DNA of 64,000 nt from contig OW569395.1 in the NCBI GenBank assembly GCA_937625935.1, positions 243,065-307,064 of the forward strand. Reading direction: 5' to 3'. The notes below the pieces were generated by a model, which saw only the letters and a program-made list of their open reading frames with translations, made no database searches and was not told the origin of the DNA. The translations under genes were made by a program, and so were the position numbers. The DNA comes from Tetramitus jugosus. Taxonomy: Eukaryota; Protista; Heterolobosea. Below are positions 24,803 to 64,000 of the stretch, piece by piece (position 1 is the stretch's first letter; every line of letters starts with the position of its first letter).

Positions 24803-26266
24803 ATGTCGCTGTTTGATAGTGGAGCTTTAATCACAATATTCTTGGCAGTAGCCATGTTGTTCACCGGTACCATCAACACGTTGGGTATGCATCATGATCA
24901 ACTCATCACATGAATGAAGCTATCAACAGGAAGAATGAAGAAATTGACACCAAAAAATTTTATTTGTTTTTTTAGCCACCAAATTTCAAGATTTAAGAGT
25001 TGTCAAGGGTATTGGTGATGGTCCACCAACTGCTTTTGAACATCCATTCTCTCAAACAGCTGCCATGTTTTTGGGTGAGCTCTTGTGTCTATTTGTCTTC
25101 TATTTGACTCTCTTACCAAAGTACTTTTCAAAGAAGGAAAGCTCTGGTGAAGAAAATGAGAGCTTGACACAGTCTGATGCACTCGCTGGTGATGACTCAC
25201 AAGCAAAGCAAAAGAAACCAAAATTGAATCCTCTTGTTTTGTGGATTCCTGCTTGTTGTGATTTGGGTGGTACCACACTGTTGAACGTGGGTCTGTTCTT
25301 GGTATGTGTTTTTAGCTCTCTAGCTGAGCTTTATTTTTTTGGCGCCAAAATTTTGTTTTACGGGATGGCGATTCTCACTCTTTTTTTTTTTGGTGTTGAC
25401 AATGTGCACAGACCTATGCTTCTGTGTATCAAATGTTGAGAGGTATCGTTGTGGTGTTTAACGGTTTGTTGGCATTCATCTTTTTGAAGCAACGTTTGTA
25501 TCCACATCACTGGGGAGGTATTCTCTTGATTGTTCTTGGTACTGTGATTGTTGGTTTGAACACGATTTTGTATCCTCAGGGAGAGGGTGCTGATGTGCCA
25601 CGTAATCCAACTCTTGGTAACATTTTGGTGATTGCCGCTCAAGTTTTGGCCGCCATTCAATTTGTTGTCGAAGAAAAATTTTTGTCCAAGTATGATGCAC
25701 CTCCATTGCAAGTTGTTGGTTGGGAAGGATTCTGGGGATTGAGCATGTGTTCTGTTGTGCTCTTTGTGTTGTATTGGATTCCTGGAAGTGATTATGGAAG
25801 CATGGAAAATGCAGTTTATGCGTTTGCTCAAATGTACTATGACTGGAAGTTGTTGTTGGCTGTGTTGGGCAGTGTTTTCTCCATTGCCTTTTTCAATTTC
25901 TTTGGTATCAGTATCACGCAGAGAATCAGTTCTACTACTCGTTCCACCATTGATAGTATGAGAACCTTTTTGATTTGGATTGTTTCATTGATTATTGGTT
26001 GGGAACATTTTTCATGGTTGCAGATTGGTGGTTTCGCTGTCTTGGTTCTCGGAAGTTCCATCTACAATGAAGTGTTACCAATTCCATACTATAGAGCATG
26101 GTACAGAAAGAACAAGGCTGACTATTTGAAACGCCAAGCAGAAGAGCAAGAAAGAAAGGAACAAGAAGAGGTGGACAAGACTATTGAGAGAAGAAAGGCT
26201 CTTCAAATCAAGTATAGGAACCAATCTAAGGACTATGGCAGCTACGCCAATGTTCCAACCAACTAA
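24803..26266 (+). CDS. SLC35F6-like drug/metabolite (nucleotide-sugar-type) transporter; introns 24885-24975 and 25302-25411
   Basis: MLFTGTINTL|ATKFQD..FEHPFSQTAAMFLGELLCL..PACCDL..|TYASVYQMLRG..QFVVEEK..VVGWEGFWG..SIAFFNFFG. Both GTATG...AG introns restore the frame. Confidence 0.9.
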
Positions 26267-26286: not shown

Positions 26287-26690
26287 TTAATAATCCGTGT
26301 CAGAAGTCATCATTGCCATTCTCACATGAAGCCAGTCAAGCATAAGAGAATAGACAAGAATGGAACGTTGAATGTCTCTGTCGTCCGAGGAGTTAAACAG
26401 TGTGCAACCACTAAATGTTTAGTGACTCACAACAGAGACATCAATGCGGCCAAAAACATGCTCCATCTACTGAGAACAGAAATGGATGGACAGTCACGTC
26501 CCGATGCCTTCAAGAGGAAGAAAAAGGTCGCAAAAGAATTAATCAAAATGGTGGAACACCTCCAAGGCTCACTCCATCAAGCTGCTATGTAAATCCCGAT
26601 TATAGGAGCGTTAAGGTGTCTTATCGGGAAACCATAATGTTTTTATTATGGCTTGATGGACAGTAGACCGCCACCTTAATAATCCGTGTC
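26287..26690 (+). repeat. 15-bp direct repeat TTAATAATCCGTGTC at 26287-26301 and 26676-26690
   Basis: Exact duplicate on both sides of the Fanzor fragment. Confidence 0.95.
26302..26675 (+). mobile_element. 5'-truncated Fanzor/TnpB element (C-terminal Zn-ribbon + RuvC-III coding fragment plus right end)
   Basis: Frame from 26302 reads RSHHCHSHM...GVKQCATTKCLVTHNRDINAAKNMLHLL...SRPDAFKR, i.e. the C..C..NRDxNAAxN..RP..F tail typical of Fanzor/TnpB. The segment is bounded by a 15-bp direct repeat. Confidence 0.85.
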
Positions 26691-26694
26691 GCTC
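26594..26694 (+). ncRNA. Predicted Fanzor omegaRNA (scaffold to about 26679, guide from about 26680)
   Basis: Stem TCCCGAT(26594-26600)/ATCGGGA(26623-26629); hairpin CCATAAT-GTTTTT-ATTATGG (26632-26651); loop sequence TTAAGGTG (26611-26618) is exactly complementary to CACCTTAA (26672-26679), forming a pseudoknot next to the flank. The 5' and 3' limits are estimates. Confidence 0.65.
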
Positions 26695-28610
26695 GTGTCA
26701 TACAAGTCTGATCTCGTGGATGATTTTCGTCTGAATCTGCTGCTCTGATTGCTACTGCCCTTGGTTGTCCGACTGCTTCTGGAATTGGGTTTCGATCTTG
26801 ACGCTCGTTCATCATCACTCGTCATGTAGTCACTCGTCGAGTAAAGACTATCGCTGTAGATATTGGCTTTCTTTCTTGTTGATTTGCTCGCCATGTTTGA
26901 AGGGGAACTTGATCTCCGTGTATGTTTCTTTTCGTTTAACTTGTGGAGCTTGTTCTTTAGCACATTTGGATCGAGTTTTGGTTCTTCTCTTAGTTTAGGT
27001 GATCTGCTCCAAGCTCTGGGTGGAGTTGATGGTCGAGAATTCTTCTTACCTCTACCGTTTGTATCTAGATCAGAATTTCGAGATGTAGTAATTAATCGCT
27101 TTTCGGGAAGCCGTCCCCGAGATGAATCTCGTTCAACCGAAGAACTTCTACTAGAGCTACGTGAAGATTGTTTCGGAACTGGTGGTTTTAGAGATTTTGC
27201 TTTCGCGTTCTTTTGTGCAACATACTGTGTTGGATTGAACCTTGTTGAAGATTTAGGTGCTGAAGTGGGTCGGTTGTTTCTTGGACTTGGAGAGAGTGAT
27301 CGTCCTCGAGACGAACCATTGGCTCTCGAAACGGAGGAAATTTTCTTGTCATCATGAGCCATCTTATCCAATTTTAACACTAGTCGATCACATTCGGCTC
27401 TCCATCTCTTCTCAGATTTTGTCATTTTAATTAAATCTTCCCTGTACAGTGCAATTTCGTCGTCCTTCTTCTTCAAGAACTGATCTTTGAGCGCTTTGTC
27501 CTCTGCCAATACTTTTAGTTGTCTCCGAAGTTGTCGAATCTCTACTAGATATTGTTTGTTGTTGTGCCCGGTTTCAACGTGCACTTTAAGATTTGATATT
27601 TCATTCTTTTGGGCGATGTAATCTGCGGTTAGGTTTTCACATTCCTTTCTCACGTCTGATAGTTCCTTTGCGCTATCCTTTTGTAGCTGTTCGAAAGCTT
27701 GTTTAATATTCTTGTACTCTCGTCTTAGTTTCTCATTTCTTTCAACCATAAACAATAATATCATATGTAAATACAGTAAGAAATGGCCAATATTCCGATC
27801 CAACAACATGGACAAATAAATACCTACTCTTTCTGAATCTTTTCAGTTTCTTCATCATTCTGAAAACTATTGTCCCTCTGAGACTTCAACTTTCCTCTCA
27901 AGATTAAATTTTCTTCCTTCACTTTTGCATTTTCTTCCCTCAACACTTGAACCATCTTTTTCAACCTCTCTGCATCTGGTTTAACATAACTTAGTGGTAG
28001 AGGATAATGAACACAATCATATTCTACATGATATACCATGTCCAAGTACCTCTGATTCAAATTTTCCTTGAGAGATGATGAAACAGAGTGTTTTGTCAGC
28101 AAATCAGCAGTAGAAGAAGAGGCCATTGTAGTGGCAGTACTTCCACTCTTTCTTCTAAAGTTCTTTTGACACACGAGTTCCAACTGAGACCTCGTTAACA
28201 GCTCTAGAGTCACAGATGTCGATGTCCGTTTCAATCCATCGAACAACATTTGAACAAATTTTCGAAAGTTTTTAAAGTTTCGAGCTGTGGCAGTCACATT
28301 TTCAACATCTGATCGCACAGCAGTATCCCAAACAGCAACAAACAACAAAAACAAGGGAAAAAGTCAAACAAAAATGCTTTTTGGACTCAAAAAGAAGATG
28401 TTGGTAAAACGAACCTTGTATGGTAAACTCTCCACACCATTGATCACAAGTTGATTGTTTCTCCACACTGAGAAATAAGGAACTTTGCTTTGGTGTTCGC
28501 ATGATACAGGTGTAAGGTTCATTGTAGAAAATGTAGTCTACTTTGAAGGCAAAATCTTGATCATTGTTGCTTGCACCGCCTTCTTGTTGTTGTGGTATAG
28601 CTCCACTCAT
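26676..28610 (-). CDS. CCDC61: CCDC61/VFL3 centriolar SAS6-like protein; introns 28414-28309 and 27827-27739
   Basis: KVDYIF..DQWCGEF..|DVENVTATARNFKNF..F..ML..SVTLELLT..RYLDMVYHVEYDCVHYPLPL matches the CCDC61 head domain. Followed by a coiled coil and RFNPTQYV. Confidence 0.85.
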
Positions 28611-62231: not shown

Positions 62232-63222
62232 TCCGTAGTATTTTGAAAACCGGTTTTTTTTGACGTTTCCTTTTTTGGCATATTGTTTTTTGAGATTTTT
62301 TATTGCTCTAGGAGCTTCATCTGGTTGAGGTGAATAGATTGGCGTGGTTTTCAACTCGATTTGAGCTTTATCGGCTCGTAGAGCCGATATATCTGTGCTC
62401 TATTTAACAGATTTTTATCGGCAACAGTGTTAAAACAGCAATAGATTGTAGATGATTTTGATCCTATACTGGGGATAAGAGGTACAAGTTAAACATGATT
62501 TCTTTGTCTTAGACCAGAGTATTGAGACATTATTTGATCATTTTTAACATGATTTCCTACTAACTATATTTTTTGACTTGATGTCTTATGACTTGATTAT
62601 TCTGAAATTTTGACTGACTTGATTTTGCGTTTTTCTGAATAGAATCGATAGTTTTTATCAATCAATCACAGTATGATCAGATGTTTTATCTATTATTGAG
62701 ACTTTTTGATTCAAAATACTGCAAGACAGTGAAAATAGTGAAGTCTCAAATTTGATTCGAGTTTATAGTTAAAATGCCAGACTCAACCGATCAGAAATAG
62801 AGAGTACTAGCTTTGCTTCACACCAATACAGTTTTATGAGTGTAATGGACCGAAAATCGTTAAAATAATTCTTCTTCAGAGAAAGAGAAACTCTGATATA
62901 ATGAGAATTCCAATTTTGTGTTTTTCTTGAGTGCAGAGTTGAATACCCGAACCCAACCCGTCATAATTCAAGAAGAATAGAAATAATTAGTCATAAAACA
63001 AATATTGACTCCCTTAATTGCCTCTAATTCTTCCATATGTCGAGCATTCAAGGAGAGGTTTTCTGTTTGTGACAAAAACGAAGGAGGAAATGTCAGGAGA
63101 TGGAAAAAGATATGGACTGAGTAGTTTTAGCTTCCCTTTATCTTGTGTGATCAGATTTTAGATAGTAGATCGATACTGTTTTGAATTTGGATGAAATTTT
63201 TGATTTTTGAGAAAGAAGTTCA

Positions 63223-64000
63223 TTTGGGTTTGGGTTTGGGTTTGGGTTTGGGTTTGGGTTTGGGTTTGGGTTTGGGTTTGGGTTTGGGTTTGGGTTTGGG
63301 TTTGGGTTTGGGTTTGGGTTTGGGTTTGGGTTTGGGTTTGGGTTTGGGTTTGGGTTTGGGTTTGGGTTTGGGTTTGGGTTTGGGTTTGGGTTTGGGTTTG
63401 GGTTTGGGTTTGGGTTTGGGTTTGGGTTTGGGTTTGGGTTTGGGTTTGGGTTTGGGTTTGGGTTTGGGTTTGGGTTTGGGTTTGGGTTTGGGTTTGGGTT
63501 TGGGTTTGGGTTTGGGTTTGGGTTTGGGTTTGGGTTTGGGTTTGGGTTTGGGTTTGGGTTTGGGTTTGGGTTTGGGTTTGGGTTTGGGTTTGGGTTTGGG
63601 TTTGGGTTTGGGTTTGGGTTTGGGTTTGGGTTTGGGTTTGGGTTTGGGTTTGGGTTTGGGTTTGGGTTTGGGTTTGGGTTTGGGTTTGGGTTTGGGTTTG
63701 GGTTTGGGTTTGGGTTTGGGTTTGGGTTTGGGTTTGGGTTTGGGTTTGGGTTTGGGTTTGGGTTTGGGTTTGGGTTTGGGTTTGGGTTTGGGTTTGGGTT
63801 TGGGTTTGGGTTTGGGTTTGGGTTTGGGTTTGGGTTTGGGTTTGGGTTTGGGTTTGGGTTTGGGTTTGGGTTTGGGTTTGGGTTTGGGTTTGGGTTTGGG
63901 TTTGGGTTTGGGTTTGGGTTTGGGTTTGGGTTTGGGTTTGGGTTTGGGTTTGGGTTTGGGTTTGGGTTTGGTTTGGGTTTGGGTTTGGGTTTGGGTTTGG
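63223..64000 (+). repeat. Telomere, (TTTGGG)n, about 130 units, G-rich strand running to the window end
   Basis: 778-bp perfect hexamer array with a single TTTGG variant at about 63967-63971. Confidence 0.97.

Follow-up and report, generated by a model that had tools for sequence, protein, structure and literature searches.

The fragment and its neighbours

The window, a 64,000-nt stretch of Tetramitus jugosus contig OW569395.1, is a chromosome end, with a telomeric GGGTTT array at positions 63222-64000. Positions 26299-26679 of the window are occupied by the 3' 381 bp of a Fanzor1 element. On its upstream side and on the same strand, the last exon of an EamA/SLC35-type transporter gene (25424-26266, plus strand) ends 33 nt before the fragment, and this gene is a possible source of read-through RNA for it. 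On the other side lies the last coding stretch of a minus-strand gene (26676-27815). This gene was searched exon by exon, and the match of an upstream exon to CCDC61 (6hxt, E 0.007) is weak evidence that it is CCDC61-like. The element was inserted at the stop codon, which is overlapped by its right TTAA (26676-26679, plus strand), and the gene was left intact.

The coding tail (26299-26592, plus strand) comprises a zinc ribbon and the RuvC-III RD. As the original prediction had read it, the translation of 26302-26592 contains CATTKC, NRDINAAKNM and RPDAFKR, with a stop codon at 26590-26592. The RuvC-I D, the RuvC-II E, REC and WED are all missing, and the fragment therefore cannot encode the nuclease. 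The profile search suggested for this translation gave a divided answer, with a weak match for the fragment alone (PF07282, E 0.0037, below the cut-off) and strong matches for full-length sisters. The tail is 98-99% identical to the tails of full-length copies, whose open frames span roughly 650-685 aa. Compared with the sisters closest to it, the window copy is short by 2 nt after 26305 and by a further 2 nt after 26602, both private deletions. Since its left end is absent the copy is now immobile as well as protein-less, and it may still give rise to a slightly damaged omegaRNA. Ghost omegaRNA loci of the Spu-1 type have lost the ORF, carry both inverted repeats and are mobile. The window copy has no left terminal inverted repeat (TIR), and its left junction is a target duplication located where that repeat would stand. 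Protein-less omegaRNA loci (ghost guides) and a TTAA TAM are already known; the main interest lies in what is probably a homing scar, with its set of alleles, in a TIR-borne Fanzor1.

A Fanzor1 family on Kolobok-like ends

Searches of the amoeba's own genome gave 43 DNA and 42 protein matches, corresponding to about 36 distinct right ends. Fanzor1 proteins, of about 600-900 aa, are marked by a RuvC triad in the order D(PG), E, zinc finger and RD; within the sequence read, a single open frame with all three triad motifs is retained by 19 copies. The family is young. In a single-sequence search with a full-length copy the sole match was SpuFz1 (E 2.7e-14). A family profile ranked Fanzor1 far above Fanzor2 and TnpB, with SpuFz1, GtFz1 and PpFz1 (6e-97, 3e-74 and 1e-73) far ahead of ApmFz2 (6e-11). 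An AlphaFold model of a family copy (pLDDT 90) superposes on SpuFz1 with a TM score of about 0.7 (Foldseek E 1e-22). Judged by sequence, profile and model the nuclease family is Fanzor1, which bears out and narrows the earlier assignment to a eukaryotic RNA-guided nuclease family; RNA-guided cleavage itself is predicted. An assignment to Fanzor2/IS607, which is TnpB-like and without TIRs or duplication, was ruled out by the TIRs, the TTAA duplication and the profile ranking. Some 1,900 related clusters exist, and no relative was found among viral contigs. With that many relatives and a TTAA TAM already known, the family would be ordinary if regarded as a new editing enzyme alone.

All 31 of the 31 right ends read lose similarity immediately past CCTTAA. 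Because similarity stops exactly at the TTAA, the predicted guide boundary (26680) is right, and the proposal that the scaffold ends in TTAA with the guide following it is borne out at the level of sequence. The accompanying check for full-length copies gave the same boundary: full-length sisters exist, and none of the 31 ends stops elsewhere. The same start would be expected from the Fanzor1 rule that the duplication forms part of the omegaRNA scaffold (PMC10711439). By analogy with described Fanzor1 systems the guide would be about 15 nt long (PMC10711439, PMC11423790), and the predicted guide (26680-26694, plus strand) is taken from flanking DNA, which here is the antisense strand of the final codons of the host gene. 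Of the 31 right flanks, 13 start the guide with G, 10 with T, 7 with A and only 1 with C.

The right TIR GACCGCCACC (26666-26675, plus strand) mirrors the left end GGTGGCGGTC. Left ends in the family are known mostly by coordinates; a metagenomic relative revealed the left end as a mirror of the right one, and a pattern search found TTAA+GGTGG(C/c)GGTC inverted 2.55-4.6 kb upstream of 12 right ends. As these 12 copies have mirrored left ends, the family consists of TIR elements that end in GG...CC and duplicate TTAA, the TIR being at least 10 bp long. Normal insertions, as seen in the 12 copies, duplicate TTAA only. This fits the signature of the Kolobok superfamily, namely TTAA duplication and 5'-RR...YY-3' termini, and the superfamily has been reported in Naegleria (PMC9587614). 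We therefore describe the family as a Fanzor1 on Kolobok-like carrier ends, a likeness drawn from the ends and the duplication, while Kolobok is missing from the Fanzor carriers listed in PMC13565253. No transposase was found, and a piggyBac carrier was rejected: the genome has 13 PF13843 matches, none of them inside a Fanzor element, and the GG termini also differ (PMC9587614). Transposase matches of the piggyBac type, in open frames of 582-968 aa, lie at G000:C34:198515, C18:150044, C30:266267, C18:38735 and C39:393561. Elements of 3.2-4.6 kb on G000 contigs C8, C22, C26, C34, C43 and C6 carry an extra 1-2.5 kb upstream of Fanzor, which is not a piggyBac transposase. TTAAGGTWCC was also tried as a general left end, and among the Fanzor copies it fits only L057 and L029.

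TTAA as the insertion target is supported at both ends of 12 copies and once at an empty site (see below). A TAM of exactly TTAA does not hold up equally well, because occupied CC-TTAA-guide ends would then target themselves. From this we infer that the TAM is longer than TTAA and reaches further 5', or that self-cutting is otherwise blocked. For comparison, the TAM measured for GtFz1 is TTAA(N) (PMC10432273). That a TAM equal to the duplication would mean self-targeting turns the point into a sharp prediction on the TAM.

Among the known systems SpuFz1 of Spizellomyces punctatus (PMC10432273; PDB 8gkh) is the best sequence and fold match. The two elements share a single ORF between TIRs, no transposase, a right-end omegaRNA and protein-less derivatives (PMC10432273). 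They differ in the ends, with TTAA duplication and GG..CC termini here and TA within a CATA TAM in Spu-1, and the identity is about 19%. The present family also has predicted pseudoknots, and scars of the kind described below are not among the features given there for Spu-1 (PMC10432273). GtFz1 of Guillardia theta is likewise a Fanzor1, with the TAM TTAA(N) (PMC10432273, PMC11423790). In contrast to the present family, its locus is reported to be without inverted repeats, and its omegaRNA has 150 nt; as the identity is about 15%, the likeness of the TAM cannot be carried over as evidence for this family.

Several copies have been rearranged. The Fanzor ORF of the copy at C2:593775 is split by a MITE (L008:1227-1431) that measures about 200 bp and has inverted ends of 17 bp. 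Copies L017, L018, L020, L021 and L024 are about 71-89% identical to L002 overall, yet their 3' ends are near-identical, which suggests that Fanzor variants have exchanged sequence by recombination or conversion. Seven copies (L012-L016, L020 and L027) have a different terminal 25 nt, ending ACTACATCCTTAA, and this type of end is nearly identical to that of a Fanzor in a different sample (L065:1210-1241) with 42% identity, suggesting that ends have been swapped between Fanzor families. A sister Fanzor1 subfamily has a different and shorter right end, which in L062, L063 and L066 finishes with CTCTAT; L059, from the own genome, looks related.

The omegaRNA scaffold

The region 26570-26679 is predicted to fold more stably than its shuffles (z = -3.17), and no Rfam family matched. 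Three elements of the original prediction lie where it had placed them (all on the plus strand): a 7-bp stem (26594-26600/26623-26629), a hairpin now called H2 (26632-26651; 7-8 bp with a U-rich loop) and an 8-nt complement (26611-26618/26672-26679). It had missed a further hairpin, H1 (26585-26605; 5' arm 26585-26592, loop 26593-26599), which is 8 bp in most sisters and covaries in diverged relatives. Because 2 nt are gone after 26602, this conserved upstream hairpin is trimmed to 5 bp in the window copy, and the scaffold can thus no longer be called intact. The loop of H1 supplies the 5' strand of the 7-bp stem, which is therefore probably a first, H-type pseudoknot. The stem covaries in diverged relatives, where CCCGA/UCGGG becomes CCCAA/UUGGG and CUAAA/UUUAG, with three of six pairs changed on both sides in an imperfect alignment. 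In alignment A2, 95.7% of cells pair, compared with 30-48% for slid partners, and the covariation score was reached by none of 500 shuffles, in a test where the structure came from the aligned sequences themselves and the rows are mainly from close relatives. A 10-bp helix (26573-26582/26651-26660) was considered as the core and dropped, being perfect in the window copy and broken in many sisters.

The invariant TTAAGG (26611-26616, plus strand) complements the terminal CCTTAA and is a candidate for an end-pairing pseudoknot. Across six lineages, tested for covariation and sharing 49-78% identity with L002 at their ends, TTAAGG is kept 69-82 nt from the end while its neighbours change. The pairing is 8 bp in the subtype of the window copy only and 6 bp family-wide; in the seven copies with the other right end and in three diverged relatives it is 6-7 bp with no compensation, one relative having 9. 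In the sister subfamily (L062, L063 and L066) the corresponding loop and end, aligned on a short anchor, retain four pairs, two of them changed on both sides. The pseudoknot proposed earlier stays plausible for its invariant 6 bp, which show no covariation within the TTAA family, and the 8-bp form is not family-wide. Analogy cannot carry it, since Fanzor1 omegaRNAs are reported to lack, and to have lost, a 3'-end pseudoknot (PMC10711439, PMC13565253). Taken together the alignments are suggestive of a conserved end-pairing pseudoknot in this Fanzor1 family, and the TTAAGG/CCTTAA pairing could also be a subterminal repeat acting at the DNA level. If the pseudoknot is real, the view that its loss let Fanzor1 ride many transposons would have to be revised.

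The duplication at the left junction and the alleles of the site

The original prediction had overlooked a perfect 15-nt direct repeat, 26287-26301/26676-26690, which consists of TTAA and the first 11 guide bases. Its left copy (plus strand) is made up of TTAA (26287-26290), which at the empty site is the tetranucleotide targeted and the predicted core of the TAM, and of 11 nt repeating the start of the guide target (26291-26301). The last three of these, GTC (26299-26301), are a microhomology common to the target (+9 to +11) and the interior of the element. A second patch, TGTCAT, lies 5 nt past GTC in the same register in target and element, and a 2-nt loss lies 4 nt beyond GTC. The chance that the 12 nt outside the microhomology would match within 20 nt of the junction is about 3e-6. 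No such duplication was found within the flanks examined of L003, L019 and L022 (left-truncated) or of L030, nor in metagenomic loci within the DNA examined. As the other truncated copies read show none, the scar is verified for one copy only. A tRNA-Glu gene stands on the same strand about 30 nt upstream of the left-truncated Fanzor tail of L022 (1854-1928, stored orientation), with a T5 run between them.

Alleles of the site were read from contigs of four runs (X1, X3, X4 and X7; DNA or unlabelled), and these contigs give no phase. X7 has a precise empty site, with the 15-mer in single copy and one TTAA. X1, X3 and X4 have an empty site short of one TAA. The left junction of the truncated copy was present in X3 with no differences and the right junction in X1; both runs are probably from the project of the assembly itself and hence not independent. 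The truncated copy is a polymorphism of the site, and neither X4 nor X7 has it. A donor allele, in which the site would hold a full element, did not occur among the joints and loose ends listed for these runs. The TAA loss removes the terminal Tyr of the host protein, and because the protein of the one outgroup keeps this Tyr, the TAA-deleted allele is, on the sequence, derived, with the predicted TAM removed from in front of the target. Lacking a TAM there it would escape cutting, an escape paid for with the final residue of the host protein. The deletion may also be simple slippage in a 2-unit repeat. We are unsure if the left scar junction would be immune to cutting, considering that the GtFz1 heteroduplex is only 9 bp (PMC11423790).

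The fragment is probably the product of an aborted homing event after a Fanzor cut. A TTAA/TIR transposon carrying Fanzor1 would once have resided here, with an omegaRNA guide read from its right flank, and an empty allele (as in X7) would have been cut by Fanzor protein from an intact copy, 14-21 nt past the TAM if the enzyme behaves like SpuFz1 and GtFz1. The right broken end would then have entered the occupied chromatid or homologue and been extended by copying, first through the guide and the TTAA and then across 381 bp of the element, before it was released early and joined at GTC to the trimmed left end. The expected product, TAM plus 11 target bases, element tail, TTAA and guide, is the sequence observed, and the sole perfect target of the damaged omegaRNA would be the empty allele of the same locus. 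Several observations support this: the perfect 15-bp repeat begins exactly at the TAM, where normal insertions duplicate TTAA only; the X7 empty allele, the TAA-deleted alleles and the junctions in X3 and X1 are present; and the copy has an exact right end and no poly(A) tail. The 19 copies bearing the triad and the resemblance of the model to SpuFz1 suggest a source of the nuclease. By analogy, the cut sites known for SpuFz1 and GtFz1 (14-21 nt past the TAM, PMC10432273; 14-17 nt for GtFz1, PMC10432273 and PMC11423790) would fall just beyond the duplicated stretch, and as the 11 retained bases are fewer than this distance, modest trimming is needed. The unexplained 7-19 bp duplications of Chlamydomonas Fanzor1 elements (PMC3627910) also argue for it. 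Against it stand the donor allele, which was not seen, and the single verified scar.

Deleted copies of DNA transposons usually arise by abortive gap repair, and internal deletions and swapped ends are frequent in this family. A transposase alone might have sufficed, if after excision a left TTAA misprimed on the right TTAA of a sister, as the TTAA at both ends allows, copied 11 nt of flank and paired at GTC with the strand synthesised from the right side, with no RNA-guided cut required. Two template events would however be needed, the ordinary form of such repair retains the left TIR or joins at TTAA with no flank copied, and a length near the Fanzor cut distance is left without a reason; we consider this origin unlikely. 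A 5' truncation with microhomology and a 15-bp duplication is, on the other hand, the classic signature of a LINE, and target-primed reverse transcription of a Fanzor transcript, or RNA-templated repair of a break, would leave a copy truncated at its 5' end and flanked by a 15-bp duplication of the target. No donor allele would be needed here if the RNA ended at TTAA, and the two private 2-nt deletions suit sloppy synthesis. The absence of poly(A) speaks against such an insertion, as does a 3' end of exactly TIR and TTAA without foreign flank, when Fanzor1 omegaRNAs extend some 15 nt beyond the duplication (PMC10711439), and we regard it as quite improbable.

The locus had been proposed as a maintained protein-less guide donor acting in trans, to which regulation of the host gene by the antisense guide may be added. 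The omegaRNA region is nearly whole, the genome has 19 potential protein donors, the upstream gene could read through, and the ghost omegaRNAs of SpuFz1 work (PMC10432273). A trans target was not found: the assembly has no other site within 2 mismatches, and 5 sites at 3 mismatches compared with 11 control matches. Moreover, the scaffold is damaged, and the allele, being polymorphic, is missing in X4 and X7. That the 3' end survives is explained by the origin of the copy, and the antisense relation by insertion at a stop codon. Such a role is very doubtful, and we retain aborted homing as the most probable explanation of the fragment.

Bao and Jurka described 5'-truncated Chlamydomonas Fanzor1 elements with 7-19 bp duplications starting at the target motif, which are rare in Fanzor-less Helitrons, and left open if Fanzor is the cause (PMC3627910). 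The Helitron-borne elements CRe-1/2/3 resemble the window copy in 5' truncation, intact 3' end and motif-anchored duplication, but were explained by one-ended rolling-circle transposition, whereas the carrier here has TIRs and no rolling circle (PMC3627910). Since the same shape occurs in a TIR element, Fanzor is likely the shared cause, and the scar would separate a Fanzor effect from rolling-circle transposition of Helitrons. A parallel is the restorative homing of TnpB in IS605/IS607, with a right-flank guide and with TAM and target re-formed at the empty site; there cut and copy-back were shown by bacterial experiment, whereas here there are genomic traces alone (10.1101/2023.11.20.567912; PMC13565253). 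Such homing has been shown for TnpB and IscB, and a 2026 review lists none for Fanzor (PMC13565253; 10.1101/2023.11.20.567912). A homing role has so far been shown only in bacteria. The amoeba is free-living, cultured and probably diploid, and since it has many intact copies, guides that can be read and empty sites that are polymorphic, an in vivo role of Fanzor is directly testable. More tentatively, and with somewhat less than even confidence, one species may display three states of Fanzor homing: a cuttable empty site, an aborted copy-back with TAM-anchored duplication and a TAM-less escape allele. The same process would then explain the Chlamydomonas duplications, and a Kolobok-type Fanzor1 lineage would have kept or regained a TnpB-like end pseudoknot.

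Deletion derivatives were also met elsewhere in the family. L029 (G000:C8:461447, assembly) and L067 (520-944, metagenome) share one insertion site, with right flanks identical at 291 of 300 positions, and are different deletion derivatives, suggesting that break and repair happened there repeatedly. L068 and L069 are one short internal-deletion derivative at two different sites in two metagenomes, and deleted copies with an omegaRNA end may therefore move.
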